A DNA stretch of 64,000 nt. It comes from Anaeramoeba ignava BMAN. Its lineage: Eukaryota; Protista; Anaeramoebae. Positions 2,617-60,127 of this stretch are shown here, in pieces. Under the pieces are notes generated by a model. The model ran no database searches. It worked only from the letters and a program-made list of their open reading frames with translations, and had not been told where the DNA came from. Each line of letters opens with the position of its first letter. The first letter of the stretch is position 1. The stretch is taken from contig JAPDFW010000133.1 in assembly GCA_028826165.1 (NCBI GenBank), forward strand, positions 1-64,000. The letters run 5' to 3'. The translations under genes and the position numbers were made by a program.

Positions 2617-5600
2617 TCTTAAGATTTGGAAGAGATAAATATCGAGATACATTAGATTTCTTTTTCATCTTGATTTACAATAAAATATTCTTTTTGTGTA
2701 TTTTTCAATATTAGATGGTTTAAAATCAATTGAAATTCTGGGAAATCTTTGAAAAGGTTGAATTTTTGAATTTTTCTTGATTCCAATTTTTGGATCATTT
2801 GAAGGTGTAATTAATTGATTATTTTCTTTTTCTAAATTAGAATTAATTGCCATTTCAATTTTTGGTTATTAAAAGCTGAAAAAGTATTTGAAATTTTTGA
2901 TTATCAAAATTATCAAATTCAAAAAGTATCAATTAAATCATGGAAATGATTTGTAAATAAAGCTTTGTTTTGCATTTTCTTTTCTTCTCAATTTGTATTT
3001 CTCGAGATTCGGTGAATTTTCTTCGAGAAATTGTTTCACATTTGGTTTTGTAATTCTTTTTCGAACTTTTTCTTGTTGAATTTCTCTATTTTCATTTTCA
3101 TTTTTCATTTTCATTTTTGGTTATCATCTCTAATAATATTTTCGATTAAATTTGATTCTTCCATCTTTAAAGAATTTAATATAAAATTTAAAAATAAAAT
3201 TAATAAAAATTTAATATAAAATTTATAATAAAATTTATAATAAAATTTAATATAAAATTTAATATAAAAATTTAAAATAAAATTTAATATAAAATTTAAT
3301 ATAATATTTATAATAAAATTTATAATAAAATTTATAATAAAATTTAATGTAATATTTAATATAAAATTTATAATAAAATTTAATATAATATTTATAATAA
3401 AATTTATAATAAAATTTATAATAAAATTTAATGTAATATTTAAAATAAAATTTAATATAAAATTTAATATAATATATTTAATATAATATTTAATGTAATA
3501 TTTAATATATAATGTATTTAATATAATATTTAATGTGTAATATTTAATATAAAATTTAATATAAAATTTAATATAAATTTAATATAATATTTAATATAAA
3601 ATTTAATATAATATTTAATATAAAATTTATAATAAAATTTAATATAAAATTTAATATAAAATTTATAATAAAATTTAAAATAAAATTTAATATAAAATTT
3701 AATATAAAATTTAATATAAAATTTATAATAAAATTTAAAATAAAATTTATAATAATATTTAAAATAAAATTTAATATAAAATTTATAAAAGAATATCTAC
3801 TTTTGCTTGTATTGTCCAATCATAAAAATAATCATAAACATATCCTTCACGAATAAAAAGATCTCTAAAAAGGCTTCTTAAATAAGAATAATCAGGTGAT
3901 TCATTAAAATTTAAATCTCTTGTATATTTTAAATAAGTTGAAAATTCAACTAAAAAATAAATTAAAATATTATTTTATAAAGTTTCTTTCATTTCTATTT
4001 TTAAAGAAAAATACCTGGATATCCTTCACATAATTCTTCTATTGTTGTTGATATTTTCTTTTCAATTATTCTATCATATTTTTCTTTTTGATTTCCTGCT
4101 GGAAGACCTTGCCAAGGTAAATTTCCACGAAGAAGATAAAGTAGAACATATCCAACACTTTCTAAATCATCTCTTCGACTTTGTTCTAAAAATTAATCAA
4201 TTTTTAATTTCAATTTTAATTTCAATTTATATTTTAATTTTAATTTTAATTTTAATTTTGATTTTGATTTTAATTTTAATTTCAATTTTAATTTCAATTT
4301 TAATTTCAATTTTAATTTCAATTTTAATTTCAATTTTAATTTCAATTTATATTTTAATTTTAATTTTAATTTTAATTTTGATTTTGATTTTAATTTTAAT
4401 TTTAATTTTAATTTTAATTTTAATTTTAATTTTAATTTTAATTTTAATTTTAATTTTAATTTTAATTTTAATTTTAATTTTAATTTTAATTTTAATTTTA
4501 ATTTTAATTTTAATTTTAATTTTAATTTTAATTTTAATTTTAATTTTAATTTTAATTTTAATTTTAATTTTAATTTTAATTTTAATTTTAATTTTTAATG
4601 GGCTCGTCCCGGTGTCGACAAAAATTTAATCATCAAATAAACTTTCAATCCAACATGAAATTCAAAAATTAACATTATTGTCTTGAGAAGGAAACGAAAA
4701 AGAAATTTCGAAAAAAATCAAGAAAAAAAAATAAATAAAAAATCTTTTTTAAATTTTATAAAACATTTCTATTCAAAAGGATCTCATAACTTCACTTTAT
4801 TTTTGTTTTTAGAATTTTTCTTGAAATCTTCCAACTAAAAAGAATTGTCTTTATTTATTCTATTTTAATTTTTCTTTTATTTTTCTTTTATTTTTCTTTC
4901 ATTTTTCTTCTTTTTACAAACAACAAATTTTTTTTTTTGCTTTTTTCATATGAAATCAACACGAAATCAAAAAAAAAACGAATGAAAAACATCCTCAAAT
5001 AAGAATTTATCGACAAACGAAAGAAATTCTTGATAAACTTGGGGCACCAAATATAGGTTATCCAAAATTTATTAAATCTTTGCTCTTCTTCTTTCTTTCT
5101 AAAACAAAAACGCAACTCTTTTACAAGAATTGAATCAAAATGATAAATTCTCTCAGAATGTTATACCAAATTTGGATTTTCGTTCTTCAGAGAAAAGGGA
5201 TCTATATTCAGAAATAAGAAATTCTCATATCTTATCTCCCGATATGACTGGATTGTCTTTTTCACAATTTGAAGAAATTCTTTCCAAAATTGAAATTTAT
5301 CAACAAGAGCATCCTACTTCTTCCCAAAATCTTCTTTCTTCTCCATCTCAAATTCCTTCCCTTGATCTTCCAAATAAATTATTACTCACATTAACATGGT
5401 TAAGGCATTCTCTCACTTATCGCATCTTAGGAGCCATGTGGAAAATTGGAAAGAGTACAGTCGAAAGATATTTAAAAAAAATTGTTCCTTTATTAAGAGA
5501 AATTCTCAACAACCAAATTCACTGGTTAACAAGAGAAGAGAGGATAAGAGAAATTGAAAATGGCAATCAAGAAAAATCCCCAACTGTGTTAGTAATCGAT

Positions 5601-8495
5601 GGGACAGATCATCCCAGATTTCGGAATCTTTTGAAAGAAAAAAAATATCATTCTGTCAAAAGAGGACATTCTTTCTCTCAAATCTATTGTTGTGTGCAAT
5701 AGTAAGGGGGAAAATCATATTTTTCAAAACTGGATTCCAAGGGAGCATGCATGATTCCAAGGCAACAACAAAATCTGGACTTCTTGAACTATTGAAATCC
5801 CATAAAATTCTTGGAGATAAAGCATTTCCAGCTATATATTGTATTACACCCAAAAGAGAGTATAGAAACAAAAAGAATAACCATAAAAAATATAATTTTC
5901 ATATAAACCGCTATCGATGTATTATAGAAAATGTTTTCTCGATCTTGAAAAAATGGAAAATTTTGAAGGAAAAGGTTCAACTCAAGAAACAATTTCATAT
6001 TCAAGTAATCGAAGTGTGTGCACTTTTATATAATTTTAAATTAGGAAATGGATCTTTACGAAAAACATTTAGAGATGAAAAAGAATGGAAAAATGTGGAA
6101 ATTAAGCAAGAGAAGAGAAGAATAATTAACAAGCGGAAAAAAGAGGAAAGAATCAGAAAACAGAAGGAAAAAGAAGAAAAAGAGAAAAATAGAAATCAAA
6201 AGAGAAATCAAAAGAGAAATCAAAAGAGAAATCAAAGGAGAAACCAAAAGAGAAATCAAAATCAAAATGAAAATGAAAGTGAAAGTGAAAATGAAAATGA
6301 AAATAAAAAGAGAAATCAAAATAGAAATCAAAATAGAAATCAAAAGAGAAATAAAAAGAGAAATCAAAGTGAAAATCAAAATGAAAATGAAAATGAATAT
6401 CAAAGTGAAAATCAAAATGAAAATGAAAATGAATATCAAAGTGAAAATCAAAATGAAAATGAAAATGAATATCAAAGTGAAAATCAAAATGAAAATCAAA
6501 ATGAAAATCAAAATGAAAATCAAAATGAAAATGAAAATGAAAATGAAAATGAAAATCAAAATGAAAATCAAAGTGAAAATGAAAATGAAAATGAAAATGA
6601 AAATGAATATCAAAGTGAATATGAAAATGAATATGAATATCAAAATGAATATCAAAGTGAATATCAAAGTGAAAATGAAAATGAATATCAAAGTGAAAAT
6701 GAAAATGAATATCAAAGTGAAAATGAATATCAAAGTGAAAATGAATATCAAAGTGAAAATCAAAGTGAAAATGAAAATGAAAATGAATATCAAAGTGAAT
6801 ATGAAACTGAAAATGAAAATGAAAATGAATATCAAAGTGAATATGAAAATGAAAATGAAAATGAAAATGAATATCAAAGTGAATATCAAAATGAAAATCA
6901 AAATGAAAATCAAAATGAAAATCAAAATGAAAATCAAAATCAAAATCAAAATGAAAATCAAAATCAAAATCAAAATCAAAATCAAAATAAAAATCAAAAT
7001 CAAATTCAAAATCAAAATCAAAATGAAAGTGAAAGTGAAAATGAAAATGAAAATAAAAAGAGAAATCAAAATAGAAATCAAAAGAGAAATCAAAAGAGAA
7101 ATCAAAAGAGAAATCAAAAGAGAAATCAAAAGAGAAACCAAAATAATGAGAATACAACAATGATAAAAATTGATAATGGATTTATTTCCTGTTTAAAGAG
7201 GAGAAAAGTGGGGAAAAGAAAAGAGAAAATTGAAAAGAAAATCATTTTTGAGATGGATGATCGAATCAATGAGGAAGAAAAGAACACAGAGATTGCCAAA
7301 AAAGATTTTGTAGGAAAATTTATGGAAATAGAAGAGGTTTCAAGTATTGAGAAGAAAGAATCGAACTTTGATTACTCTCAAAAATGGGAAGTCACTAATG
7401 TAAGTGAATCCAAAAGAATTGAAAAAACTTATCCCAAATTTGGTTTTCGAGAATTGAGAAATTTCGGTAAAGGTTCAGCTCGAGAGGATCCTACTAAAGC
7501 TAATTTGCTCAATGAGATCAAAGGGTTGACTTTAGTAACACCAGTTGTAAATTTTGAAAAACTTGGGATTAATGAAGATTGGGAGTACAGAATAGACCTT
7601 CATGGCTTATTAGATTTTTTCAGATATAATGAATTCTCTGAATTCTTTTCTGTCTGAAAAATTATATCAAGGTCCTGAATTTTTTGAACTTCAATTTAAT
7701 CCCTTAATAGAATGTTTAGAAGGTATGCCTCCAAATTTAGAAGAAATTGATAATAAATTCACCATGGGATCGCAACTATGGGTTTTGCTTTTTGTGATTT
7801 GGTCTCAAAATCTATTTTCTTCTGTCATTTTATGGAAGTTTCTGGACTATTTTAAGCAAATCCCACAAATTCCTATTGAAGAATGTTGGATAAATTTCTT
7901 GATAAATTTTCACACGAGAGAGAAGACAATTTTGAAACAATATGCACAAGCTATGATAAATCAAAGCATGTTTCCATATCATATGATGAAATGTCATAGA
8001 GAATTCCAAAAGATGATAGATTTCTTCTTGAAATGCTCTGTGAGTGAACAACAATATATTCCTCTTATTTTCTATTATGATATGCATTATGTGGTGATTT
8101 TTCTACATTTTAATCAAAGAGAATTGTTAATATTCAACAGTAAATCAACGCTTTTTTCACGAATTCCCTATCAAATTGTAAAAAATCTCCAAAAGTTCAT
8201 CAAAAATTACTTAAATATGGATTTTGTGATTAAACAAATTTGGCATCATTGGAATCAGAGAGATGGAAATTCTTGTGGGATTTTTGTTCTTTTAATGTGT
8301 TGGGGTTGTTCTCAACTGAGATTAAATCCTTATCTTCTGGCTAATTGCTTGGAAATGAATATTGTTTATCGTTTCAGATATTTAATTCTCAAATTATTTT
8401 CTTTGAGTCAAAAAAAAAGAGATTTTATCTCAATTCGACAACTTGAAAATTTGTTGAAAAAAGGAATAAAGAGAAATTCCACTTTTTGGAAATGA

Positions 8496-8564
<69 letters not shown>

Positions 8565-10435
8565 AAAATTAATTAAAAAAAAATTAATTAAAAAAAAATT
8601 AATTAAAAAAAAATTAATTAAAAAATTGTTTAATTATTTTTTTTTATTTTTTTTTTCTGGCAAATGGGCCTGGGACAGGCCCAATTTTAATTTTAATTTT
8701 AATTTTAATTTTAATTTTAATTTTAATTTTAATTTTAATTTTAATTTTAATTTTAATTTTAATTTTAATTTTAATTTTAATTTTGATTTTGAATTTATAT
8801 TTTACCAATTCCTAAATGTGTATTAACTGATGCATATCTTGCTGTTCCTGTTAATTTTTTATTATCTCTATATATAATATGTTGATGAGTTCTTGCATCT
8901 CTAAATTTCTTTGCTAAACCAAAATCAATAACACTAATTTGATTTCCTTTTTTACCAGTTCCCATTAAAAAATTTTCAGGTTTAATATCTCGATGAATAA
9001 AACTTCTTGAGTGAATATATTCAATTCTGCAAAGCTTTAAATTTTAAATTTGATTTGAATTTAAATTATATTTAGATTTATATTTATAATTATATTTATA
9101 ATTATAATTATAATTATATTTATATTTATATTTATATTTATATTTATATTTATAATTATAATTATATTTATATTTATATTTATATTTATATTTATATTTA
9201 TATTTATATTTATATTTATATTTATATTTAAATTTATATTTATAATTATATTTATATTTATATTTATAATTATATTTATAATTATATTTATAATTATATT
9301 TATATTTATATTTATATTTATATTTATATTTTATATTTAGATTTATATTTATATTTATATTTATATTTATATTTATATTTTATATTTATATTTATATTTA
9401 TTTTTATTTATATTTATATTTATATTTATATTTATGTTTATATTTTATATTTTATATTTATATTTATAATTTATAATTATATTTATATTTATATTTTATA
9501 TATTTATATTTTATAATTATATTTATATTTATATTTTATAATTATATTTATATTTATATTTATATTTTATATTTATATTTTACTAGATTTTATATTTTAG
9601 ATTTATATTTAGATTTATATTTTATATTTATATTTTATATTTATATTTATATTTATATTTATAATTATATTTGTATTTATATTTATATTTATATTATTTA
9701 TATTTATATTTATATTTATATTTAAATTATATTTTATAATAATATTTATAATTTATATTTATATTTATAATTATATTTTTATTTATATTTAAATTTGATT
9801 TGAATTTAAATTATATTTATATTTATATTTATATTTATATTTATATTTATAATTAGATTTATATTTATATTTATATTTATATTTATAATTATATTTATAT
9901 TTATATTTATATTTATATTTATATTTATATTTATATTTATATTTATATTTATATTTATATTTATATTTATATTTATAAATTTGTAAAAAAAAATATTACT
10001 AATTGATCTGCAATCATTAAAACAGTTTTAAGAGAAAATCTTCTAGAACAAAAATTAAGTAAATCTTCCAAACTTGGACCTAATAAATCCATAACCATAA
10101 CATTATATCTTGTATCAATTCCAACCCATTTCACAGACGGAATCCCAACTCCTCCAGAAAGAATACGATATATTTTACTTTCATATATTAATTGTGGATG
10201 TTTTGTATTAATATTTTCCTATATAAATATTTGAAAGAATTTATATTTAAGTTTTTTTAAAAAAGATATTTTTATAAAATTTTTATTTATTTAATTTTTT
10301 TTTTACAAATTTTATTGCAACTTGTTCATGTGTAAATATATTTCTTGCTTGATAAATAATTCCAAAAGATCCTGCTCCAATTTTCTTTTCAATAACCCAT
10401 TTATGAGCAACTTTTGATTGTATTTTTGGATCCAT
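2617..10435 (-). CDS. CK1: Casein kinase I, multi-exon. Exons 10435-10307, 10218-10000, 9034-8806, 4185-4015, 3949-3801, then a C-terminal tail from 3164 to about 2617 (indel-ridden, 3' end uncertain)
   Basis: Manual splicing at GT-AG sites gives [12 protein letters not shown]...[22 protein letters not shown]...[13 protein letters not shown]...[38 protein letters not shown]...IDFGLAKK...[29 protein letters not shown]...LPWQGL/...PDYSYLR...YDW, which are canonical CK1 motifs. Confidence 0.95.
3170..3790. repeat. 12-bp tandem repeat (AATATAAAATTT)n filling CK1 intron 5
   Basis: Direct reading; source of spurious ORF 3568-3819. Confidence 0.85.
4201..4596. repeat. (ATTTTA)n microsatellite in CK1 intron 3, resuming at 8686-8785 on the far side of the transposon
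   Basis: Same hexamer array on both flanks of the element. Confidence 0.9.
4600..8682 (+). mobile_element. PHIS (PIF/Harbinger/IS5-like) DNA transposon family A, copy 1 (4083 bp), TSD AAT, inserted in CK1 intron 3
   Basis: Left end GGGCTCGTCCCGG (4600-4612); right end reverse complement GGGCCTGTCCCAG (8670-8682, 10/13 match); AAT at 4597-4599 and 8683-8685; near-identical inverted copy at 56149-60127; encodes a DDE transposase. Confidence 0.95.
5130..8495 (+). CDS. DDE_Tnp_4 transposase + N/Q/E low-complexity linker + C-terminal Ulp1/SENP-like (C48) protease; about 1100 aa when frameshifts are repaired; start codon unresolved
   Basis: [34 protein letters not shown]; DDE motifs [35 protein letters not shown]; C48-like [17 protein letters not shown]...LLIFNS...[13 protein letters not shown]. 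Frameshifts near 5570, 5690 and 7620-7650 are absent from copy 2. Confidence 0.85.
9060..9975. repeat. (TATATT)n microsatellite filling CK1 intron 2
   Basis: Direct reading; intron 9035-9999. Confidence 0.9.
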
Positions 10436-10574
10436 TTTTGAAAAAAAAAAATGAAAAAAAAAAAAATGAAAAAAAAAAATGAAAAAAAACATAAATTTGA
10501 CATTTACAAATTAAATAAAAAAAACAAAAAAAATAATTTAAATTTAAAAGGAAAATCCTTTTATTTTTTTTTAT

Positions 10575-12779: not shown

Positions 12780-12918
12780 TCAAATCCATTTTTAAATTAT
12801 TTTTAAATTACAATAAAAATAAAGGAAAAAGAGGAAAAATTAAAAAGAGAAAAATGAAATTAAAAAGAAAATGAAAATTTTTATAGTTTTTCATTTTTCT
12901 TTTCTAATTTAAATTAAA

Positions 12919-15142
12919 ATGCAAACTCAAATACAAAATGCAATTACAACACATTTTAATCAACTTGTTCAAGAAAAAGATAATTTAATTAATCTTTTTA
13001 ATGATACTGAAATACAAAAAAGAGAACATGAAGTTGTTGTAAAAGCATTAACTCCACTTGATAAAGCAAGAAAGTGTTTTCGATTAATTGATGATGTTTT
13101 AGTTGAACAAACAGTAGGAGATGTTCTTCCAATTCTTGAAAAAGAATTAGCTGATGTAAATTACAAATTACAAAACACAATTATTTATAAAATTATTTAT
13201 AAAATTATTTATAAAATTAAATATAAAATTAATTATAAAATTAAATATAAAATTATATATAAAATTATTTATAAAATTATTTATAAAATTATTTATAAAA
13301 TTAAATATAAAATTATTTATAAAATTATTTATAAAATTAATTATAAAATTATTTATAAAATTATTTATAAAATTAAATATAAAATTATTTATAAAATTAT
13401 TTATAAAATTAATTATAAAATTAATTATAAAATTATTTATAAAATTATTTATAAAATTATTTATAAAATTATTTATAAAATTATTTATAAAATTAATTAT
13501 AAAATTATTTATAAAATTAAATATAAAATTAATTATAAAATTATTTATAAAATTATTTATAAAATTATTTATAAAATTAAATATAAAATTATTTATAAAA
13601 TTATTTATAAAATTATTTATAAAATTATATATAAAATTAAATATAAAATTAATTATAAAATTATATATAAAATTAATTATAAAATTATTTATAAAATTAA
13701 TTATAAAATTAAATATAAATTTATTTATAAAATTATTTATAAAATTATTTATAAAATTAAATATAAAATTAATTATAAAATTATATATAAAATTAATTAT
13801 AAAATTAATTATAAAATTATTTATAAAATTAATTATAAAATTAAATATAAATTTATTTATAAAATTATTTATAAAATTATATATAAAATTATATATAAAA
13901 TTAATTATAAAATTATTTATAAAATTAAATATAAAATTATTTATAAAATTATTTATAAAATTAATTATAAAATTATTTATAAAATTATTTATAAAATTAA
14001 TTATAAAATTATTTATAAAATTAAATATAAAATTATTTATAAAAATTAAATATAAAATTGAATATAAAATTATTTATAAAATTATTTATAAAATTATATA
14101 TAAAATTATTTATAAAATTAATTATAAAAATTATATATAAAATTATATATTAAATTATTTATAAAATTATTTATAAAATTATATATAAAATTATATATAA
14201 AATTAATTATAAAATTATTTATAAAATTATTTATAAAATTATTTATAAAATTATTTATAAAATTATTTATAAAATTATTTATAAAATTAATTATAAAATT
14301 AAATATAAAATTAAATATAAAATTAAATATAAAATTAAATATAAAATTATTTATAAAATTATTTATAAAATTAATTATAAAATTATTTATAAAATTATTT
14401 ATAAAAATTATTTATAAAATTATTTATAAAATTATTTATAAAATTAATTATAAAATTATTTATAAAATTATTTATAAAATTATTTATAAAATTATTTATA
14501 AAATTATTTATAAAATTATTTATAAAATTATTTATAAAAATTATTTATAAAATTATTTATAAAATTAAATATAAAATTATTTATAAAATTATTTATAAAA
14601 TTAAATATAAAATTATATATAAAATTAAATATAAAATTAAATATAAAATTAATTATAAAATTAATTATAAAATTAATTATAAAATTATTTATAAAATTAT
14701 TTATAAAATTATTTATAAAAATTATTTATAAAATTAAATATAAAATTATTAATAAAATTATTTATAAAATTAAATATAAAATTAAATATAAAATTATTTA
14801 TAAAATTAAATATAAAATTAAATATAAAATTATTTATAAATTTATTTATTAAATTAAATATAAAATTATTTATAAAATTAAATATAAAATTATTTATAAA
14901 TTTATTTATAAAATTATATATAAAATTATTTATAAAATTAATTATAAAATTATTTATAAAATTAGATGGAAAAAACAAAAGAATCACTCCAAAAACAATT
15001 AGAATTAAAATCAAAAGAAGTTGTGGAATTTCAACAAAAACACCATCTCAATTTTGGTGCAATGAAAAATGCACAAAAAAAACCTACAGATGAAAAACCA
15101 AAAGAAAATGAAAAAAAGAAAGAAAGTGGAATTTTGATTTAA
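12919..15142 (+). CDS. PFDN2: Prefoldin subunit 2 (exons 12919-13155, 14966-15142)
   Basis: EHEVVVKALTPLDKARKCFRLIDDVLVEQTVGDVLPIL is the prefoldin-2 signature; GT at 13156, AG at 14965; exon 2 in frame and ends ...SGILI*. Confidence 0.9.
13180..14960. repeat. 12-bp tandem repeat (TATAAAATTATT)n forming almost all of the 1.8-kb prefoldin intron
   Basis: Direct reading; source of the spurious IIYK read-through in ORF 12919-14049. Confidence 0.9.
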
Positions 15143-19017: not shown

Positions 19018-22000
19018 ATGAATCAAAAAGTTTTATTTCAAGATTTATTAAGTGCATGTCAATATAATTCATTTGAATCAGTTAAATTTCACATTTCAAA
19101 AGGAATCAATGTTAATATTTCCAATAATTTTAATGAAACACCATTACATTTAATTTGCCAAAATATAAATCCAGAATCATTTGAAATTATCAAATTTCTT
19201 GTTTCAAATGGAGCAGATATTAATGCCAAAACTTATCATAATGAAACACCATTACATTTTGTTTGTCAAAATCGAAAATTAAGTGAAAATTCAGATGAAA
19301 TTATCAAATTTCTTGTTTCTAAAGGAGCAGATATTAATGTCAAAATGCAAAATAATGAAACAATTCTACATTTAATTTGTCAAAGTCCAAATCCAAAATC
19401 ATTTGAAATTATTAAATTTCTTATTGAAAACGGAGCAGATATTAATGCCAAAACTTATGAAGATGAAACATCATTACATTTTGCTTGTCAAAGTCCAAAT
19501 CCAAATTCATTTGAAATTATCAAATTTCTTGTTTCAAATGGAGAAAATGTCAAAATCAAAACAAATAATAATGAAACACCATTACATTTTGCTTGTCAAA
19601 GTTCAAATCCAAATTCATTTGAAATTATCAAATTTCTTGTTTCAAAAGGATTAGATGTTAATGCCAAAACAAATCAAAATGAAACACCATTGCATTTAAT
19701 TTGCCAAAATCCAAATCCAAAATCATTTGAAATTATTAAATTTCTTATTGAAAACGGAGCAGATATTAATGCCAAAACGAATAATAATGAAACACCATTA
19801 CATTTTGCTTGTCAAAGTTCAAATCCAAATTCAATTGAAACTATCAAATTTCTTATTGAAAAAGGATTAGATTCTAGTTATAAAACAAATAGAAATTGCA
19901 CAGCATTACATTTTGCTTGTCAAAGTCCAAATCCAAATTCAATAGAAATTATCAAGCTTCTCGTTTCAAAAGGATTAGATATTAATGCCAAAACAAATAC
20001 TAATGAAACACCATTACATTTTGCTTGTCAAAGTTCAAATCCAAATTCGATTGAAATTATCAAATTTCTTGTTTCAAAAGGATTAGATGTTAATGCCAAA
20101 ACAAATAATAATGAAACACCATTACATTTTGCTTGTCAAAGTCCAAATCCAAATTCAAATGAAATTATCAAATTTCTTGTTTCAAAAGGAGCAAATATTA
20201 ATGCCAAAACAAATAATAATGAAACACCATTACATTTTGCTTGTCAAAATTCAAATCCAAATTCAATAGAAATTATCAAATTTCTTGTTTCACAAGGATT
20301 AGATGTTAATGAAAAAACAAATCAAAATCAAACACCGTTACATTTTGTTTGTGAAAGTGAAAATCCAAATTCAAATGAAATTATCAAATTACTTGTTGAA
20401 AACGGAGCAGATGTTAATATAATCTCGCATAACAATAACCAAACACCATTACATTTTGTTTGTCAAAGTTCAAATACAAAGTCAAATGAGATGATCAAAT
20501 TTCTTATTGAAAATGGAGCAGATGTTAATGCCAAAACTTATGTAAAGCAAACACCATTACATATAGTTTGCCAATATCAAAATCAATTAGAGTTTCCATT
20601 CCAAAATGAAAATGAAAATGAAAATGAAAATGAAAATCCTAAATTATTTGAGTCGATCAAACTTCTTGTTTCAAAAGGAGCAAATGTGAATGATAAAACA
20701 AATTATAATGAAACAGCATTACATTTTATTTGCCAAAGTAAAAACTCAAATTTATATGAAATTATCAAATTTCTTGTTGCAAATGGAGCAAACATTAATG
20801 ACAAAACATCTCGTGATATGACTCCTTTGCATTTTGCTTGTAAAAATCGAAACAAAAATTCAGCGGAAATTATTAAGTTTCTTGTTGAAAATGGAGCTGA
20901 TGTTAATGAAAGAACGGAAAATAATGAAACTCCATTACATTTTATTTGCAAAAATCTCAACTCAGTTGAAATTATCAAATTTCTTGTTTCAAACGGAGCA
21001 GATGCTAATGAAAAAACAAACAATAATGAAACAGCTTTGCATTTAATTTGCAGAAATCTAAATGAAAATTCAATGGAAATTATCAAATTTCTTGTTGAAA
21101 AGGGATTAGATATTAATGCCAAAACAATCAAGAATGAAAGTCTATTGCATTTAATTTGTGAGAATCCAAATGAAAATTCAAAGGAAATTATCAAATTTCT
21201 CATTTCGCAAGGATTAGATATTAATGAGGAAACAAATTATAATCAGACCCCTTTACATATTGCTTTTACTCATGGATACTCGCTTCAAATGATTGATTTT
21301 CTTATTGAAAACGGTGCAGATATTAATAAGAAAACAACAGAAAAAGCACAAACAGAATTACATTTAATTTGCCAAAATATAAATGAAAATTCATTTGAAA
21401 CCATCAAATTTCTTGTTGAAAAAGGTTTAAATGTGAATGAGAAAACAGATGAAAACAATACTCCTTTACATTTAATTTGTCAAAATATATTTGGGAACGA
21501 AAATTTGTTTCAAATCATCAAATTTCTAGTTGAAAAGGGAGCAAATGTGAATGAGAAAACAAATAGAAACCAGTCACCTTTGCAGTTAATTTGCCAAAAC
21601 CCATATATAAATGAAAAATTATTTGAAATTATCAAAATTCTTGTTGAAAATGGAGCTGATGCTAATATCAAAACATACCAAAATGAAACTCCTTTACATT
21701 TAATTTGCCAAAATGAAACTGAAAATTTAAGTTTAATTGAAACTATCAAATTTCTTATTGAAAAAGGTTTAAATGTGAATGATAAAACAAATAGAAATGA
21801 AGCACCTTTACATTTGGTTTGTAGAAACCCAATTCTCAAGCAAAATTTATTTGAAATTGTCAAGTTTCTTGTTTCAAATGGAGCAAATGTTAATGATAAA
21901 ACAAACCAAAATGAAACAGCTTTGCATTTAATTTGCCAAAATCAAAATCCAAACCATGATTCAGTTGAAATTATTAAATTTCTTGTTTCAAAAGGAGCGA

Positions 22001-29164: not shown

Positions 29165-29250
29165 TTTAAAAAATGAAAAAAATGAAAAGAAAAAAATGAA
29201 AAAAAACAATTTTTTTTGAATTGGAATTGAAAAAAAAGAAAAAAAAGAAA

Positions 29251-50325: not shown

Positions 50326-53300
50326 TTTGATAAAAAATAATTTAAAATCAATGTGCTCTTTTTTTTCAGCAAGTGGGATTTTTCTCTTCACTCCTCGCTT
50401 ATTCCATTTTTTGCACTAAGCTACTTATTCACAAAATCGGAAATTTTCTCTATTTTAAAATCAAATTAAATTTTAATTGGAAAAAAAATTTTTTTTTTCT
50501 TTTGTTTTAAATTTTTCATAAATTTTCCCTATTTCATTTTTCTTTTTACTTTTTACTTTTGAATTTTTAAATCGTTTTAATTATCAAAATTCAATTTATT
50601 TAAAGTTTAAGATGAATTTACAAAAAATTTTAGCAGAAATGTTCAAGAAGATCGATAAAATAGATGAAGAAAATGATAGAAAACATGGATACAAATCAAA
50701 AAAAGTTGAGAAAATTATCTTTTCTAAGAAAAGTCCTTTAAAAGTCCTTTGGAATTGGGCTCTGATGAAAGTAGATGAAAAATGTTTACAAAAAATTACT
50801 AGTTTCTCCATGAAAGAATTTATTTCAATTTATAATATAGTAAAACCATATTTGTTCACTTTCTATCAGAAATCACAAGAGAAAGAAATTTCAAAAAAAA
50901 ATGTTCTCTTAATCATTCTTGTTTACCTTCGGAAGTATTACATCTTTGAAGATCTTGAAAAATTTTTTGGAATTAGTCAATCTTCTATTCATAAAATAAT
51001 TAGTCAAAATATTAAAAGAATTATGAACCCTTTAAAAGAATGGCAAATCTATTGGATTTCCAAAAGTGATCAAGAGAAAGCCAACATCAGATTCCTTCAT
51101 TATCCTGACGCTATATGTGTAATTGATGCAACTGTGCAAAAGTGTCTTAAACCAATTGATTCAAATATTCAAGGTTTGTTCTATTCGGGTAAGCACAAGT
51201 ATCATTGTTTAAAATCTTTAACTATTCATGCTCCTGATGGAATTCTCATGGACTTCATAACTGGAATCCCAGGTTCTCATCATGACAAGAAACTGTGGGA
51301 TTCGACAAATTGGTGGAATAAATGCCGAAGACCCAAAAAGAAGACAAAACAAAATAAGAATAAGAAAAAAAAGAAAAAAAAGAAAAAAAAGAAGAAAAAG
51401 AAGAAAACTACTAAACAATTACAAAAAGAACAAGAAAGGGATGCTCAAAAAAATTTGAAAAAAGAATATTATGGAGTTTTGGCGGATCTGGGTTTCCAGG
51501 GAATCCAGAAAGTATGTTACGCAATTTTGCCTCATAAAAAAAAAAAGGGTCAACTTTCCAAGAAAAAAATGGAATTCAATCACAAATTGGGAAGTAACAG
51601 GATAATTGTGGAGAATTTTTACGGAAAGTTAAAGCATTTTAAAATTTTGAAACATATATACAGAGGTGAATTAACAGATTATTCAAATATTTTTGTTGTT
51701 TGTGCAGCACTTACCAATTTCAAATTAAGGAATTCACCATTAAGAAAAAAAAAGGAAAGCAAAATAGTAAATTCAAAAGAACTCAAAGATCAAAAGATTT
51801 CTTCAAATGATTGCAATTATGATCCTATTGAAAATTCAAATGAAAATGAAAATCAACAAATTTTATCAAAAAGCTTAACTGCTCCAAGACAAAAAAGAAA
51901 GGATTTTCAAAATTTAGATTTATGTTTTTCTCAGCCTCAATCCAAATTGAAAACTTCTCAATTAACTACTACCAATCAAAAAAACGAATTAGTTATCAAA
52001 CCAAGAATTGATCTTATTTTTTTTCATCCTCAATTTTCTCAAAATCCAAATCCTGGAGTTTCCAAATTACTTTTGAAAGGAATTCCAAATTCAGGAAACT
52101 CTTGTTTTATGGCAGCAACACTGCAAGTTTTGATTCGATTAAATTTAGAATTTATTTTTAAGTATGGAAATTTGACTGGAAATGTAGTTGAATTAGTCAA
52201 GAATTTATCAAATGAAAAAAAAAAAGTGAATTTATATAGAATTCAACAAACGATGAATAAAAAATTATCAAAATTTGGATCAATATTAGAAGAAGAAGAT
52301 GCTAATGAGTTTTATGAATTTGTTTTGGATTTTCTTCGAGAAGAATCACTAGCGATGAGGAAATGGTTATTTTTTGACGCTGATAAAGAGAAAATATCAG
52401 AAAATATTTCAAGAATTAGAGCTTTTTATGGAATTTTAGTTAAAAAAATGGTCTGTGTCGACTGTGCTAATGTTCATGAAATTCCTCAAGAATTTTGTTC
52501 TTTTCCTGTATCTTTCGTTAGATCGAAACCAAAAAACAAAAAAAATGATAATGATAATGAAAATGATAATGAAAATGATAATGAAAATGATAATGAAAAT
52601 GATAATGAAAATGATAATGAAAATGATAATGAAAATGATAATGAAAATGATAATGAAAATGATAATGAAAATGATAATGAAAATGAAAATGATAATGAAA
52701 ATGATAATGAAAATGATAATGAAAATGATAATGAAAATGAAAATGAAAATGATAATGAAAATGAAAATGAAAATGAAAATGAAAATGAAAATGATAATGA
52801 AAATGATAATGAAAATGATAATGAAAAAATGAAAATGATAATGAAAATGAAAATGATAATGAAAATGAAAATGAAAATGATAATGAAAATGAAAATGAAA
52901 ATGAATATCAAAGTGAATATCAAAGTGAATATCAAAGTGAATATCAAACTCAAACTCAAACTGATAATGAAACTCAAAATGAATATCAAAGTGAATATCA
53001 AACTCAAACTCAAAGTGAATATCAAAGTGAATATCAAACTCAAACTCAAACTGATAATGAAACTCAAAATGAATATCAAAGTGAATATCAAACTCAAATC
53101 AAACTCAAATTCAAACTGATAATGAAACTCAAAATGAATATCAAAGTGAATATCAAACTCAAATTCAAACTGATAATGAAACTCAAAGTGATAATGAAAA
53201 TGAAATGCCAAGATATGAATTAAAATTTATGATTGAAAATGAATTTAGTGAAGAAAATATTTCAAAAAAAGATATTGATTACAAATGTGAGACATGCGAG

Positions 53301-54244
53301 ATATTAAAACAATATAATCTAAGGCAAAATGAAAAACACAACAAGAATCCAGATTCCATTTTACAAAAATATGAAGTCAGAAGTTTTCCACATTTTTTTT
53401 GTTTTCAAATTAAAAGATTTGTTTATGATTTTAGAAAAAAGCAAACAATCAAAATTGAAGATCCAGTTCAAATTCCACAAGAACTTGATCTATCTTCTTT
53501 TAAAACATTAGATTGCAAGGAGAATCATTTCAAATATCGATTAAGAGCTTTCATATACCATTTAGAAAAAGAAGATTACAAGCATTATATCAGTTTTATT
53601 TTTTCTGAAAAAAATAATTATTGGATAAAATGCAATGACTCACAAGTAACTACAGAAAAAAACCCAAAAGAATTAAAGTATGGATATCTTTATTTTTATG
53701 AAAAACAAATTGGAAATGAAAAAAAAATATCTTCATCTTCAAATTCAAATTTAAAAGAAAAAGAAAACAAACTTTCACAAAAGAAGGGAAAAAAAACAAA
53801 TCAGCAATCTCAAATTGAGCAAGATATTGAGGAGAAAAATCCAAAATCTGAAATTGGGAAGAGGGAAGAAAAAAGTGGAACAAAGAAGCCTAAACAAAAA
53901 TTAACAAATTTCCAAACTTTAAATTCCTCAAATTTACAAGATTTTTTCAACCTCTTACAAAAGTAAAAAGAATTAAAAAGAAATCTTTCATTTTTTTTCA
54001 AGAATTAAGAAATCAAATTCCATCAATAAAAACAGTTTTTAATTCCAATTTATTTTGTTTATTTTTGTTTTAATTAAAGAAATTCTAAAAGTTATTTTTT
54101 TCTTTTTTTTGAGAATTCTGAGTTGTGAATAGAAAAAGCGTTTGTGAATAGGATTGGAAAATAGAGAAAATTTAGGTAAAAGGAAATAAAAGAAAAATGA
54201 ATGGGAATTTTTTTTGTGAATGTCTTACTTGTTGTGAATATATC
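50323..54244 (+). mobile_element. PHIS-type DNA transposon family B (termini not resolved)
   Basis: DDE_Tnp_4 transposase; inverted subterminal motifs (AAATTTTCTCTATTTT at 50441-50456 vs its complement at 54158-54173; TATTCACAA vs TTGTGAATA); the same 145-bp array on both sides. Confidence 0.6.
50612..53966 (+). CDS. DDE_Tnp_4 transposase fused to a USP/UCH (C19) deubiquitinase; frameshifts inside the N/D/E repeat tract
   Basis: HTH LLIILVYLRKYYIFEDLEKFFGISQSSIHKII; VIDAT, FYSGKHKYHCLK, GSHHD, LADLGFQG, RIIVENFYGKLKHFKIL; in the same ORF USP Cys box KGIPNSGNSCFMAATLQVL, EEDANEF, CVDC; ORF 53205-53966 supplies CETC, FPHFFCFQIKRF and His box YRLRAFIYH...KHYISF...WIKCNDSQV. Confidence 0.88.
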
Positions 54245-54595
54245 TATTATAATTTATTTATAATTTGTTTTTAAAAGTAATTTTAAATAATTTTATTAAT
54301 AAATATTAATTTAATATTATTAATAATATTAATGTATTTTTATTAAATATTTTTAATTAATTTTTTATTTATATTTTTAATAATAATTTATTATAATTTA
54401 TTTTTAAAAGTAATTTTAAATAATTTTATTAATAAATATTAATTTAAAATTATTAAAATTATTTTAATTTTATTAAATATTTTTAATTAATTTTTTATTT
54501 ATATTTTTAATAATAATTTATTATAATTTATTTATAATTTGTTTTTAAAAGTAATTTTAGATAATTTTATTAATAAATAATAATTTAAAATTATT
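54245..54595. repeat. Continuation (about 2.5 units) of the 145-bp A/T array, same orientation
   Basis: Anchor at 54342 and 54472. Confidence 0.8.
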
Positions 54596-56148
54596 TCCAA
54601 ATTTTTTAAAATTTCATTTTTCTAGATTTTTTTTTATTTATTCAAAATGGAAATTTTTTGGGATTTAGAAACTTGTGATCTATTTCCTAACGTAAAAATA
54701 GTAGATTTAATTAATTCTATTTACATCTTCGCATTAGAATATGGGAATGTGAATAAGATACATGCATATTTTAATCAAAAAGAATTTTTCAAAAATCCAA
54801 TTTTTGAATTTCAAAAAATTCGAGATGATTTTTCAAAAATTGGAATTGAAATATCTCTCATTTTAGAAGAATTCTTTGCAAATATTTGTGAATTAGTATT
54901 AAATCATGAATTTGATAAAGCGTATTTATCTGATCAAATTCAATTAAAAATTATTTTAATTACTGGAAATCAAATAATTTTATTTAAATTACTTGAATTT
55001 CTCGAAAAACAAAATGTTTCGGTTATTTTAATTTGTCCTTTGAATAATGATTGGTTTCAAAAAAATTACAAAAAAATTTTGGGATTTAGATGTGTTCATG
55101 AATGTTTTAATTGGCCTCCTATTGAATTTCCACTTTTTATTCAACCAAAAAAATATTTTGATGAAATCCACTTCAAAATTGAAAATCTAAATGAAAATCA
55201 AAACCAAAATCTAAATCAAAATCAAAATCAAAATCTAAATCAAAATCTAAATCAAAATCTAAATGAAAATCAAAATCAAAACCAAAATCAAAATAAAAAT
55301 CAAAATCAAAATCAAAATCAAAATCAAAACCAAAATCAAAATCAAAATCAAAATGAAAATCAAAATAAAAATAAAAATAAAAATCAAAATCAAAATCAAA
55401 ATCAAAACCAAAATCAAAATCAAAATCAAAGAAAGAATTTAAATCAAAACCAAAATATAAATCAAAATCAAAACCAAAATATAAATCAAAATCAAAATCA
55501 AAATCAAAATCAAAATCAAATTGAAACTCAAAATCTAAATCTAAATCAAAATCAAAATCAAAATCAAAATCTAAATCTAAATCTAAATCAAAATCAAAAT
55601 CAAAATGAAAATCAAAATCAAAATCAAAATCAAAATCAAAATCAAAATCAAAATCAAAATCAAAATCAAAATCAAAATCAAAATCAAAATCAAAATCAAA
55701 ATCAAAATCAAAATCAAAATCAAAATCAAAATCAAAATCAAAATCAAAATATAAATCTAATTCAAAATCAAAATCAAAATCAAAATCAAAATCAAAATCA
55801 AAATCAAAATCAAAATCAAAATATAAATCAAAATCAAAATCAAAATGAAAATCAAACTGAAATTAAAATTGAAAATGAAAATAATATTCCATTTCAATTC
55901 TATAACTTATTTCAAAAATCTAGAGAAAAGGAGTATTCATTTCAATTTTCCAAATCAAATACAGAAAACGAAAAAACTCCAAAAATTCCTTATCAATTCA
56001 AAAAATTGATGAAAATTCTATTAGCATTTCAAACAGATAAAATCACGTTCAATGATTTAAAAAAAGTATTTTCCATTTATTATCCTTTTTTATCAATTGA
56101 ACTAAATAGATTTCTTCTTCTTGCTGAGGAACAAGGACTTGTTATACT

Positions 56149-56280
56149 GGGCCTGTCCCAGGCCCATTTGCCAGAAAAAAAAAATAAAAAAAAATAATTA
56201 AACAATTTTTTAATTAATTTTTTTTAATTAATTTTTTTTTAATTAATTTTTTTTTAATTAATTTTTTTTTAATTAATTTT

Positions 56281-56329
<49 letters not shown>

Positions 56330-59300
56330 TCATTTCCAGAAAGTGGAATTTCTCTTTATTCCTTTTTTCAACAAATTTTCAAGTTGTCGAATTGAGATAA
56401 AATCTCTTTTTTTTTGACTCAAAGAAAATAATTTGAGAATTAAATATCTGAAACGATAAACAATATCCATTTCCAAGCAATTAGCCAGAAGATAAGGATT
56501 TAATCTCAGTTGAGAACAACCCCAACACATTAAAAGAACAAAAATCCCACAAGAATTTCCATCTCTCTGATTCCAATGATGCCAAATTTGTTTAATCACA
56601 AAATCCATATTTAAGTAATTTTTGATGAACTTTTGGAGATTTTTTGCAATTTGATAGGGAATTCGTGAAAAAAGCGTTGATTTACTGTTGAATATTAACA
56701 ATTCTCTTTGATTAAAATGTAGAAAAATCACCACATAATGCATATCATAATAGAAAATAAGAGGAATATATTGTTGTTCACTCACAGAGCATTTCAAGAA
56801 GAAATCTATCATCTTTTGGAATTCTCTATGACATTTCATCATATGATATGGAAACATGCTTTGATTTATCATAGCTTGTGCATATTGTTTCAAAATTGTC
56901 TTCTCTCTCGTGTGAAAATTTATCAAGAAATTTATCCAACATTCTTCAATAGGAATTTGTGGGATTTGCTTAAAATAGTCCAGAAACTTCCATAAAATGA
57001 CAGAAGAAAATAGATTTTGAGACCAAATCACAAAAAGCAAAACCCATAGTTGCGATCCCATGGTGAATTTATTATCAATTTCTTCTAAATTTGGAGGCAT
57101 ACCTTCTAAACATTCTATTAAGGGATTAAATTGAAGTTCAAAAAATTCAGGACCTTGATATAATTTTTCAGACAGAAAGAATTCCAGAGAATTCATTATA
57201 TCTGAAAAATCTAATAAGCCATGAAGGTCTATTCTGTACTCCCAATCTTCATTAATCCCAAGTTTTTCAAAATTTACAACTGGTGTTACTAAAGTCAACC
57301 CTCTGATCTCATTGAGCAAATTAGCTTTAGTAGGATCCTCTCGAGCTGAACCTTTACCGAAATTTCTCAATTCTCGAAAACCAAATTTGGGATAAGTTTT
57401 TTCAATTCTTTTGGATTCACTTACATTAGTGACTTCCCATTTTTGAGAGTAATCAAAGTTCGATTCTTTCTTCTCAATACTTGAAACCTCTTCTATTTCC
57501 ATAAATTTTCCTACAAAATCTTTTTTGGCAATCTCTGTGTTCTTTTCTTCCTCATTGATTCGATCATCCATCTCAAAAATGATTTTCTTTTCAATTTTCT
57601 CTTTTCTTTTCCCCACTTTTCTCCTCTTTAAACAGGAAATAAATCCATTATCAATTTTTATCATTGTTGTATTCTCATTATTTTGGTTTCTCTTTTGATT
57701 TCTCTTTTGATTTCTCTTTTGATTTCTCTTTTGATTTCTCTTTTGATTTCTATTTTGATTTCTCTTTTTATTTTCATTTTCATTTTCACTTTCACTTTCA
57801 TTTTGATTTTGATTTTGAATTTGATTTTGATTTTGATTTTGATTTTGATTTTGATTTTGATTTTCATTTTGATTTTCATTTTGATTTTCATTTTGATTTT
57901 GATTTTGATATTCATTTTCATTTTCATTTTGATATTCACTTTGATATTCATTTTGATATTCATTTTCAGTTTCATATTCACTTTGATATTCATTTTCATT
58001 TTCATTTTCATTTTCATATTCACTTTGATATTCATTTTCATTTTCATTTTCATTTTCATATTCACTTTGATATTCATTTTCATTTTCATTTTCAGTTTCA
58101 TATTCACTTTGATATTCATTTTCATTTTCACTTTGATATTCATTTTCATTTTCACTTTGATTTTCACTTTGATATTCATTTTCACTTTGATATTCATTTT
58201 CATTTTCACTTTGATATTCACTTTGATATTCATTTTGATATTCATATTCATTTTCATATTCACTTTGATATTCATTTTCATTTTCATTTTCATTTTCATT
58301 TTCATTTTCATTTTCACTTTGATTTTCATTTTGATTTTCATTTTCATTTTCATTTTCATTTTGATTTTCACTTTGATTTCTCTTTTTATTTCTCTTTTGA
58401 TTTCTATTTTGATTTCTCTTTTTATTTTCATTTTCATTTTCACTTTCACTTTCATTTTCATTTTGATTTTGATTTCTCTTTTGGTTTCTCCTTTGATTTC
58501 TCTTTTGATTTCTCTTTTGATTTCTCTTTTGATTTCTATTTTTCTCTTTTTCTTCTTTTTCCTTCTGTTTTCTGATTCTTTCCTCTTTTTTCCGCTTGTT
58601 AATTATTCTTCTCTTCTCTTGCTTAATTTCCACATTTTTCCATTCTTTTTCATCTCTAAATGTTTTTCGTAAAGATCCATTTCCTAATTTAAAATTATAT
58701 AAAAGTGCACACACTTCGATTACTTGAATATGAAATTGTTTCTTGAGTTGAACCTTTTTCCTTCAAAATTTTCCATTTTTCAAGATCGAGAAAACATTTT
58801 CGATAATACATCGATAGCGGTTTATATGAAAATTATATTTTTTATGGTTATTCTTTTTGTTTCTATACTCTCTTTTGGGTGTAATACAATATATAGCTGG
58901 AAATGCTTTATCTCCAAGAATTTTATGGGATTTCAATAGTTCAAGAAGTCCAGATTTTGTTGTTGCCTTGGAATCATGCATGCTCCCTTGGAATCCAGTT
59001 TTGAAAAATATGATTTTCCCCTTACTATTGCACACAACAATAGATTTGAGAGAAGAATGTCCTCTTTTGACAGAATGATATTTTTTTTCTTTCAAAAGAT
59101 TCCGAAATCTGGGATGATCTGTCCCATCGATTACCCCAACACAGTTGGGGATTTTTCTTGATTGCCATTTTCGAATTTCTCTTATCCTCTCTTCTCTTGT
59201 TAACCAGTGAATTTGGTTGTTGAGAATTTCTCTTAATAAAGGAATAATTTTTTTTAAATATCTTTCGACTGTACTCTTTCCAATTTTCCACATGGCTCCT

Positions 59301-60127
59301 AAGATGCGATAAGTGAGAGAATGCCTTAACCATGTTAATGTGAGTAATAATTTATTTGGAAGATCAAGGGAAGGAATTTGAGATGGAGAAGAAAGAAGAT
59401 TTTGGGAAGAAGTAGGATGCTCTTGTTGATAAATTTCAATTTTGGAAAGAATTTCTTCAAATTGTGAAAAAAAGACAATCCAGTCATATCGGGAGATAAG
59501 ATATGAGAATTTCTTATTTCTGAATATAGATCCCTTTTCTCTGAAGAACGAAAATCCAAATTTGGTATAACATTCTGAGAGAATTTATCATTTTGATTCA
59601 ATTCTTGTAAAAGAGTTGCGTTTTTGTTTTAGAAAGAAAGAAGAAGAGCAAAGATTTAATAAATTTTGGATAACCTATATTTGGTGCCCCAAGTTTATCA
59701 AGAATTTCTTTTCGTTTGTCGATAAATTCTTATTTGAGGATGTTTTTCATTCGTTTTTGATTTCGTGTTGATTTCATATGAAAAAGCAAAAAAAAAATTT
59801 GTTGTTTGTAAAAGAAGAAAAATGAAAGAAAAATAAAAGAAAAATAAAAGAAAAATTAAAATAGAATAAATAAAGACAATTCTTTTTAGTTGGAAGATTT
59901 CAAGAAAAATTCTAAAAAACAAAAATAAAGTGAAGTTATGAGATCCTTTTGAATAGAAATGTTTTATAAAATTTAAAAAAGATTTTTTATTTATTTTTTT
60001 TTCTTGATTTTTTTCGAAATTTCTTTTTCGTTTCCTTCTCAAGACAATAATGTTAATTTTTGAATTTCATGTTGGATTGAAAGTTTATTTGATGATTAAA
60101 TTTTTTTGTCGACACCGGGACGAGCCC
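56149..60127 (-). mobile_element. PHIS DNA transposon family A, copy 2 (3979 bp), TSD ACT
   Basis: GGGCCTGTCCCAGGCCC begins at 56149; CCGGGACGAGCCC at 60115-60127; ACT at 56146-56148 and 60128-60130; near-identical to 4600-8682. Confidence 0.95.
56330..59601 (-). CDS. Transposase-Ulp1(C48)-like fusion, copy 2 (frameshifts near 59460, 59170 and 58760)
   Basis: [14 protein letters not shown]...GSMHDS...LGDKAF...IENVFSIL in ORF 58763-59293; ORF 56330-58714 runs uninterrupted from the transposase tail (CALLYNF) through the linker into the C48-like domain. Confidence 0.85.

Follow-up and report, generated by a model that had tools for sequence, protein, structure and literature searches.

PIF/Harbinger-Type Transposases Joined to Predicted Deconjugating Proteases of Two Unrelated Folds in Anaeramoeba ignava

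Introduction

Transposons of the PIF/Harbinger type canonically produce a 3-bp TWA target-site duplication and carry, in addition to the transposase gene, a second open reading frame (ORF) encoding a Myb/SANT-like protein. Among other DNA transposons, Ulp1-carrying elements are said to have been described by Hoen in 2006 and by van Leeuwen in 2007 (KI-MULEs, other Mutator elements, and plant CACTA-ULP elements). To our knowledge, reports of Ulp1, OTU, VTD, and, on occasion, USP domains in Mutator, CACTA, Ginger, Helitron, and IS5-like elements go back some 20 years, and a role of these domains for the element has never been shown by experiment. Here, we describe PIF/Harbinger-type transposases that end in a USP or an Ulp1-like domain in the anaerobic metamonad Anaeramoeba ignava BMAN, starting from the first 64,000 nucleotides of contig JAPDFW010000133.1 (assembly GCA_028826165.1, forward strand); this whole stretch, referred to as the window, contains two copies of one such element (family A) and one copy of another (family B).

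The closest described systems belong to several transposon groups. Bao, Kapitonov and Jurka (2010; PMC2836005) reported that Ginger1 transposases can end in an Ulp1 or OTU domain and listed Ulp1 in Mutator elements; in one sentence, citing Gladyshev and Arkhipova (2009), they also described a Trichomonas vaginalis protein (XP_001314237.1) that combines an IS5-type transposase (pfam01609) with a Peptidase C19 domain, and they proposed that the ubiquitin pathway takes part in transposition and repair. Benjak et al. (2008; PMC2528002) described ULP1 in MULE and CACTA elements of grapevine, with none reported in PIF elements. The VTD deubiquitinases of Helentrons were found to be active by Erven et al. 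(2022; PMC9741609), who suggested that they guard transposition proteins against proteasomal degradation. These papers together place OTU in Helitron and Ginger1 elements and Ulp1 in Mutator, CACTA, and Ginger1 elements (PMC2836005, PMC2528002, PMC9741609). Full-text literature searches found, within searchable papers, no paper describing Harbinger-Ulp1 or Harbinger-USP elements, and the main text of the A. ignava genome paper, which reports Nanopore and Illumina sequencing (PMC11550330), contains nothing on eukaryotic transposons or ubiquitin.

Materials and Methods

The assembly comprises 42.8 Mb in 147 contigs. The genome is very AT-rich (GC content of 7–29% in the window), uses standard stop codons, and frequently contains hexanucleotide repeats encoding Asn, Glu, and Gln. 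Genes broken in the assembly were searched in pieces or through intact paralogues; no repaired, joined, or consensus protein was used. Ends of family A were fixed to the base by a four-copy comparison, with two copies in the window and two on other contigs (loci L019 and L020). A maximum-likelihood tree was calculated from the transposase region together with 65 outside relatives.

Results and Discussion

Protease Domains Follow Harbinger-Type Transposases in Six Families

A genome-wide profile scan identified DDE_Tnp_4 at 18 places across the A. ignava genome; a C-terminal USP domain was found in families B and C and a C-terminal Ulp1-like domain in families A, D, E, and F, while family G encodes a DDE_Tnp_4 protein of about 325–347 aa with no protease. 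DDE_Tnp_4, HTH_Tnp_4, and the USP domain (as UCH) were recovered by Pfam, and the Ulp1-like domain by a profile of the four families that carry it and by Foldseek. The first-pass annotation of the window had proposed in-frame fusions for both protease types, and uninterrupted frames in families C, D, E, and F bear this out. Family C (KAJ5071180.1) is one 1022-aa frame with DDE_Tnp_4 at residues 185–350 and a complete USP domain at residues 451–962, the latter matching PF00443 positions 2–254 in a single frame (88 bits; motifs CNSCFM, GHY, and FDDSKV). Uninterrupted frames joining DDE_Tnp_4 to an Ulp1-like domain are present in families D (817 aa; KAJ5073650.1), E (913 aa; KAJ5068379.1), and F (826 aa). 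A EukProt transcriptome ORF (P0002) corresponds to family C residues 319–669 with 98% identity and reaches from the end of the transposase domain across the linker and the Cys-box half of the USP domain, which shows that family C is transcribed across the DDE/USP junction. In GenBank, the proteins of loci L021–L024 are labeled “thap domain protein” (KAJ5073650.1, KAJ5068379.1, and KAJ5075180.1) or “ubiquitin carboxyl-terminal hydrolase” (KAJ5071180.1); when the C, D, and E proteins were scanned with Pfam, none contained a THAP domain, with KAJ5075180.1, the gene model of the second family C copy, lying outside that scan as a whole. Our analysis corrects this public annotation of the fusion proteins.

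Family B was identified on the forward strand of the window at approximately 50350–54245, and the motifs TATTCACAA and TTGTGAATA occur inverted near both ends. The genome contains only this copy of family B, which precludes a placement of the ends by copy comparison. Further DNA matches to family B represent repeat noise; matches of 66–71% on contigs C79, C42, and C108 were rejected as low-complexity noise (11% GC, no ORFs). One ORF (50612–53119) joins HTH_Tnp_4 (50891–51004; Pfam E 5.1e-8), DDE_Tnp_4 (51122–51718; Pfam E 3.5e-27; Asp at 51125–51127 and 51485–51487, Glu at 51611–51613), and the N-terminal half of the USP domain with its Cys box (52079–52474; PF00443 positions 2–140, E 2.2e-11, 44.3 bits; Cys at 52103–52105). 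A repeat of about 640 bp (52560–53200), which encodes Asn/Asp/Glu and Tyr-Gln-Ser-Glu, is located inside the USP domain, and the C-terminal half with the His box follows in the next frame (53214–53699; PF00443 positions 122–254, E 8.8e-21, 75.1 bits; His at 53583–53585, Asp at 53637–53639). The family B USP domain presents the motifs GNSCFM, KHY, and CNDSQV, and its N-terminal half shares 33% identity with the USP domain of family C.

Independent contigs of the source sample match family B at 50340–52540 without indels or joints, including the DDE-USP junction. These contigs bear on the alternative that the fusions are assembly or gene-calling artefacts of a repeat-rich, AT-rich long-read assembly. 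In its favor, indels outnumber substitutions between the family A copies, as would be expected from residual long-read error, and two base calls in family B (window 51082 and 51505, both synonymous in the ORF) are C in the assembly and T in all covering source-sample contigs; however, more than 10 loci, in six families, present the same architecture, the independent contigs reproduce the family B junction, and a transcriptome ORF crosses the family C junction, so that we regard this alternative as effectively refuted. None of the sequencing runs is recorded as RNA; run X5 covers only ORF-internal pieces of family B, including the DDE/USP linker (51743–52168), and is not callable as expression. 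In the genome scan, PF00443 had approximately 140 matches; these include at least nine near-identical open frames of 302–306 aa, located on separate contigs, that look transposon-borne.

Family A is present in the window as two complete elements, A1 (4600–8682, forward strand, 4083 bp) and A2 (56149–60127, reverse strand, 3979 bp); the outer coordinates that the first-pass annotation had assigned to the whole region, 4600 and 60127, are the exact outer termini of these two copies. A single ORF begins approximately 350 bp inside the element (about 4950–8495 in A1) and encodes, in order, an N-terminal motif, HTH_Tnp_4, DDE_Tnp_4, an Asn/Glu/Gln repeat of approximately 330 residues, an acidic/basic linker, and the protease-like domain; the other A1 frames of at least 60 aa are low-complexity or antisense overlaps only. 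Pfam matched HTH_Tnp_4 (E 6e-13) and DDE_Tnp_4 (E 5e-23 and 1e-22) in both window copies, and the transposase motifs GVIDGTD, LGDKAF, and IENVFS are invariant. In A1, HTH_Tnp_4 is located at 5358–5507 (E 6.4e-13; residues 77–126 of ORF 5130–5702) and DDE_Tnp_4 at 5598–6034 (Asp at 5598–5600 and 5816–5818, Glu at 5927–5929; frameshift at approximately 5672–5706), followed by the Asn/Glu/Gln low-complexity linker (6140–7200), which is open in frame and differs in length between copies, and by the Ulp1/SENP-like domain (7560–8495; His at 8085–8087, Asn at 8136–8138, Gln at 8256–8258, Cys at 8274–8276; frameshift at approximately 7615). In A2, DDE_Tnp_4 is located at 58694–59110 (Asp at 59126–59128 and 58910–58912, Glu at 58799–58801; frame broken at approximately 58760 and 59330) and the Ulp1-like domain at 56330–57271 (His at 56738–56740, Asn at 56687–56689, Gln at 56567–56569, Cys at 56549–56551), both on the reverse strand; the end of DDE_Tnp_4, the linker, and the Ulp1-like domain lie within one 794-aa frame.

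An N-terminal motif of approximately 45 residues, K..TI(R/K)(I/V)...T...L, is common to families A, D, E, and F (window approximately 4950–5100; L019 6950–7243; L023 6650–6947; L024 6420–6710; L025 6440–6718). In A1 this motif (4950–5100, forward strand) is frameshifted, and alignment of the four N-termini together with three-frame translation places the likely ATG at approximately 4950; the family F motif gives a weak DUF7557 match. This conserved motif may stand in for the absent Myb-like DNA-binding ORF.

The C-Terminal Domain of Families A, D, E, and F Resembles Clan-CE Proteases

The four C-terminal domains share only 21–24% identity, and yet His, Asn-Ser, Gln, Cys-Gly, and Phe are invariant and occur in the order known from Ulp1. 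PF02902 matched two of the four families at E 2e-4; in the genome scan, families E and F scored 21–22.6 bits as compared to a cut-off of 20.7. A profile built from the four families matched human SENP2 (1tgz) in the PDB at E 1.3e-8, with His, Gln, and Cys aligned on the catalytic residues, and its other significant matches were all clan CE (SENP1, ChlaDUB, Ulp1, S273R of African swine fever virus (ASFV), and SENP5). When a domain from another A. ignava element (family H, see below) was included, His, Asn, Gln, and Cys were invariant across six sequences with 17–24% identity. An AF2 model calculated from a six-sequence alignment had a mean pLDDT of 77.5; all of the 50 best Foldseek matches in the PDB were clan CE, including SENP5, SENP2, Ulp1, ChlaDUB, and I7L, with modest scores (best E 5.8e-4; TM 0.35–0.48 over approximately 120 residues). 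The profile match to SENP2, the invariant His/Asn-Ser/Gln/Cys-Gly residues, and the clan-CE matches of the model thus identify the family A domain, as far as profile and model comparisons reach, as a divergent Ulp1/SENP-like clan-CE domain with His-Asn-Gln-Cys and a predicted isopeptidase activity, in agreement with the first-pass assignment of a DDE_Tnp_4 transposase followed by an Ulp1/SENP-like domain. The start of the domain in A1 (approximately 7560) was placed by eye on a W-L-D-x-S-D-I-x-N motif, which by eye resembles the Ulp1 WLND motif; HMMER did not align this motif, and with a profile lengthened upstream to include it, the catalytic core alone was aligned.

The position of the catalytic Asp of Ulp1 and SENPs is occupied by Asn in every Ulp1-like copy, including that of the unrelated family H. 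This may suggest that activity was lost and that the protease domains are non-catalytic readers of ubiquitin- or SUMO-modified chromatin, steering integration or nuclear localisation. Cys-His-Asn triads are, however, active in papain-like enzymes and in many USPs, an invariant Cys, His, and oxyanion Gln at approximately 20% identity is hard to explain without catalysis, and the USP lineage retains Cys, His, and Asp; we therefore regard a reader role as decidedly unlikely.

Family H is a multi-copy element, different from families A–F, that has an Ulp1-like His-Asn-Gln-Cys domain behind its ORF (loci L054–L057; C75:405794-406660, C89:10575-11339, C13:98544-99308, and C67:507549-508046). Its upstream ORF contains a DPWH motif and has no Pfam match; the nearest Atlas clusters are labeled “Transposase” or Mutator-like, which is a lead only. 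The Ulp1-like protease module may be shared between transposon superfamilies.

Each Protease Type Is Fixed on a Separate Transposase Lineage

In the transposase tree, families A, D, E, and F are grouped in a single clade with a long stem (SH-aLRT 100), while families B and C pair with each other (support 94) elsewhere in the tree; within the genome, the USP domain of family B has no close relative other than that of family C, and vice versa, with next-best genomic matches below E 1e-8. Since A/D/E/F and B/C belong to separate transposase lineages, two acquisitions, one per protease type, are indicated, as the first-pass annotation had proposed. Within each lineage, a single acquisition was followed by retention of the protease despite extensive divergence. 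The first-pass annotation had also suggested selection on the protease; clean substitutions among family A copies (only about 3 in 795 bp of the protease region) are too few for dN/dS, and dS between families is saturated. Retention of the catalytic residues across very divergent families is the strongest available sign, and it argues for such selection.

The same observations bear on passive capture of host gene fragments (transduplication, as in Pack-MULEs), which would leave the domains without a function for the element. Plant MULE and CACTA elements are known to have captured Ulp1-like sequences; however, the domains found here are complete, always in frame, and always C-terminal, their catalytic residues are intact after divergence to 21–24% identity, and the USP domains of families B and C have no close host paralogue, which makes passive capture highly improbable.

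An exhaustive HMMER search with family C against 1.84 billion representatives identified three further proteins with DDE_Tnp_4 and USP domains in other public samples. In two of these (P0076, 659 aa; P0109, 618 aa) the domain order is that of families B and C, while in the third (P0017, 1027 aa) the order is reversed, with the USP domain N-terminal to the transposase. All three are located on contigs from read or metagenome assemblies with a GC content of 31–36%, which places them in other organisms. A single clade of B, C, P0076, and P0109 was rejected by the approximately unbiased (AU) test (p-AU 8e-6, at a cost of 55.8 log-likelihood units), although it counts against this result that the group was selected with the tree already known. 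The USP parts of the three proteins show only generic similarity to those of families B and C. As the external transposases do not group with B and C and the USP similarity is only generic, the Harbinger-USP fusion has arisen repeatedly, with at least two or three independent origins in nature. The first-pass annotation knew of no in-frame USP or Ulp1 fusion in Harbinger-type transposases; this lack of precedent is overstated in view of the IS5-like plus C19 protein of T. vaginalis (PMC2836005), of these three proteins, and of the Ulp1, OTU, and VTD domains in other superfamilies.

An inverted-repeat scan of the three external fusion contigs revealed no convincing termini. One external DDE_Tnp_4-USP gene (L045 1159–1755; ENA ERZ16268177 scaffold_30225) adjoins a gene with a weak match to Pox_A32, a packaging ATPase, which hints at a virus-like or Polinton-like context. 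For the Ulp1-fused clade, word-indexed protein searches with the full-length A/D/E/F alignment and with family F DDE words gave no matches, the first probably being swamped by low-complexity words, and these searches are uninformative on absence. An ESM Atlas search with family F returned ordinary Harbinger, HARBI1, and ALP1 clusters only. No confirmed relatives were found in JGI metagenome contigs with the four-family Ulp1-fused alignment or in viral contigs with the external USP-fusion alignment.

Families A and F Are Transposons with Defined Ends

The termini of family A, 5′ GGGCTCGTCCCGG... and 3′ ...CTGGGACAGGCCC, are imperfect inverted repeats of 13 bp, which match at 10 of the 13 positions (4600–4612 and 8670–8682 in A1). 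Perfect 3-bp target-site duplications flank all four copies (AAT, AGT, ATT, and ATT in element orientation); in the window these are AAT at 4597–4599 and 8683–8685 for A1, and ACT, as read on the forward strand, at 56146–56148 and 60128–60130 for A2. The four copies are dispersed and 98.5–99.3% identical at aligned positions, with differences that are mostly private indels. Family F has two copies with 98.2% identity, both flanked by ATT duplications, and its termini (GGGGAGATTCC.../...GGAATTGGCCC) form 11-bp imperfect inverted repeats with 8 of 11 positions matching. Family C is represented by two copies (99.6% identity) and a decayed third.

These features bear on the alternative that the fusion genes have been domesticated from transposases and now belong to the host, like HARBI1 and ALP1. 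Families B, D, and E are single-copy, GenBank annotates fusion proteins as ordinary genes, and one family is transcribed, as would be expected for host genes. However, families A and F occur as several near-identical copies at dispersed places, with terminal inverted repeats and perfect 3-bp duplications, family C has two nearly identical copies and a decayed third, and family B is frameshifted. These features speak against domestication, and it is very unlikely as an explanation of these genes at large.

The window copies A1, A2, and B are decayed, while near-intact or intact relatives are present elsewhere in the genome. At least five frame breaks were found in A1 and several in A2; outside the repeat, L019 presents one frame break (a 2-bp deletion in the protease domain) and retains an open frame of 1018 aa. 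Two of the A1 deletions are paired, −1 at 5555 and −2 at 5590, only 35 nt apart, which restores the frame and recodes 12 residues just upstream of the first catalytic Asp.

A1 and A2 are mutually inverted and bracket 47.5 kb of the window (8683–56148) with family B and host genes, including tandem actin genes (26195–27331 and 28016–29209) and genes encoding an ankyrin/BRCT protein (19018–23703) and a prefoldin-domain protein (12919–14049). The inverted pair is a possible substrate for inversion or composite mobilisation. Outside the window, the A. ignava protein KAJ5076628.1 (P0004, 744 aa) shows a weak match to Phage_integrase, a tyrosine recombinase, at residues 122–316, and its residues 420–629 share 44% identity with the family C transposase in the N-terminal half of the latter; this protein may be a Crypton-like/Harbinger chimera.

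A Possible Role of the Tethered Protease in Transposition

We consider, with moderate confidence, that these families are autonomous single-ORF PIF/Harbinger-type transposons in which a tethered deconjugating protease aids transposition. In such a scheme, the transposase would carry the protease to the transposon ends, where it would remove ubiquitin or a ubiquitin-like modifier. The target may be the transposase itself, which would be guarded from turnover or inactivation, or it may be chromatin and repair factors where the element excises or integrates; in both cases, transposition would be more likely to be completed. The functions that the first-pass annotation had put forward, namely relief from SUMO/ubiquitin-dependent silencing, protection of the transposase, and editing of Ub/SUMO signals at the DNA break, are likewise speculative. 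A deconjugating role in trans is suggested because two unrelated folds were recruited that share only this activity.

Alternatively, the protease may act in cis and cleave the fusion protein, freeing the transposase from linker and protease. Polyprotein processing is known from clan-CE proteases of adenoviruses, poxviruses, ASFV, and Polintons, and the structural neighbors of the Ulp1-like domain include two such enzymes (poxvirus I7L and ASFV S273R); the long disordered linker between the two domains would also suit cleavage. USP domains, however, depend on a ubiquitin fold located N-terminal to the scissile bond, and none of the fusion proteins contains a ubiquitin-like domain according to Pfam; in addition, a by-eye check of the linkers showed no conserved Gly-Gly site, and what the two unrelated folds have in common is deconjugation of ubiquitin-like modifiers, not processing. 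Processing in cis is thus unlikely.

Several observations weigh against the view that these are autonomous transposons aided by an active protease. For family A, the ORF list contains no second Myb/SANT-like ORF, and the target-site duplications of families A and F follow A-N-T (AAT, AGT, and ATT), as compared to the canonical T-W-A of PIF/Harbinger. The family A C-terminal domain taken alone has no Pfam match, PF02902 failing to match even at E 10, and with Asn in place of the catalytic Asp in all six Ulp1-like sequences, the His-Asp-Cys triad of C48 proteases is not present. Frame-breaking indels occur in all four family A copies. The family A domain proposed in the first-pass annotation is real, but its catalytic Asp is Asn and its frame is broken in both window copies. 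Likewise, of the DDE_Tnp_4 transposase plus USP domain that had been placed in 50612–53966 for family B, the Cys-box half does share the transposase ORF, while the His-box half is in the next frame, behind a repeat that carries two frameshifts in the assembly (two extra A at approximately 52823 and one base lost at approximately 53100). The frame-breaking indels of families A and B may be real decay or residual long-read assembly error, the latter, for family A, in a multi-copy repeat. Families D and E are single-copy and could be domesticated genes rather than active elements. Finally, the enzymatic activity and its contribution to transposition are predictions, and the modifier removed may be ubiquitin, SUMO, NEDD8, or another.

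More tentatively, ubiquitin- or SUMO-dependent restriction may be a main brake on DNA transposons in Anaeramoeba, against which several unrelated superfamilies would have converged on a deconjugating protease of their own as a counter-defence, with the Harbinger-type families as the cases described here and family H as a lead; we regard this as possible, although rather doubtful. Viruses and bacterial pathogens carry deubiquitinases, to which a transposon protease with such a function could be likened. If this is true, the A. ignava genome represents a natural experiment on the roles of transposon-borne Ulp1, OTU, and USP domains. The elements appear to belong to a genome-wide pattern in Anaeramoeba. 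One small genome contains two unrelated isopeptidase folds, each fixed on one transposase lineage and conserved through deep divergence, and the elements are compact, with a single ORF, defined ends, and small domains of a size suited to recombinant work, which makes the question testable.

Comparison with Known Systems

The elements described here share with PIF/Harbinger (PHIS, IS5-related) transposons the HTH_Tnp_4 plus DDE_Tnp_4 core with its D, D, and E residues, short G-rich imperfect terminal inverted repeats and 3-bp duplications (in families A and F), and structural neighbors among Harbinger, HARBI1, and ALP1-like proteins. They differ in that one ORF is present without a separate Myb/SANT-like ORF, in the short conserved N-terminal motif, and in a C-terminal extension of 450–800 residues that ends in a cysteine isopeptidase domain.

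Like the Ulp1 carriers among Mutator/KI-MULE, CACTA-ULP, and Ginger1 elements, families A, D, E, and F represent cut-and-paste DNA transposons that encode a C48/clan-CE domain, and as in Ginger1 this domain is C-terminal to the transposase; unlike in these carriers, the superfamily is Harbinger-type, the triad is His-Asn-Cys, and a helical insert of approximately 110 residues is located upstream of the catalytic core. For the USP families, the nearest described case is T. vaginalis XP_001314237.1, likewise an IS5-related DDE transposase with a USP/C19 domain in a metamonad protist, a likeness drawn from a one-sentence description; the A. ignava USP fusions differ from it in being known as defined elements, with two families (B and C), copies, a transcript, and a tree. 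P0076, P0109, and P0017 also combine DDE_Tnp_4 and USP Pfam domains in one protein, but represent transposase lineages separate from B and C. Helitron and Helentron deubiquitinases provide a parallel in that mobile elements have repeatedly recruited different deubiquitinase folds, although rolling-circle RepHel proteins with OTU or VTD domains are found there, as compared to DDE cut-and-paste transposases with USP or clan-CE domains here. Harbinger-type elements now join the carriers of deconjugating proteases, while the overall design had already been seen in other transposon groups.

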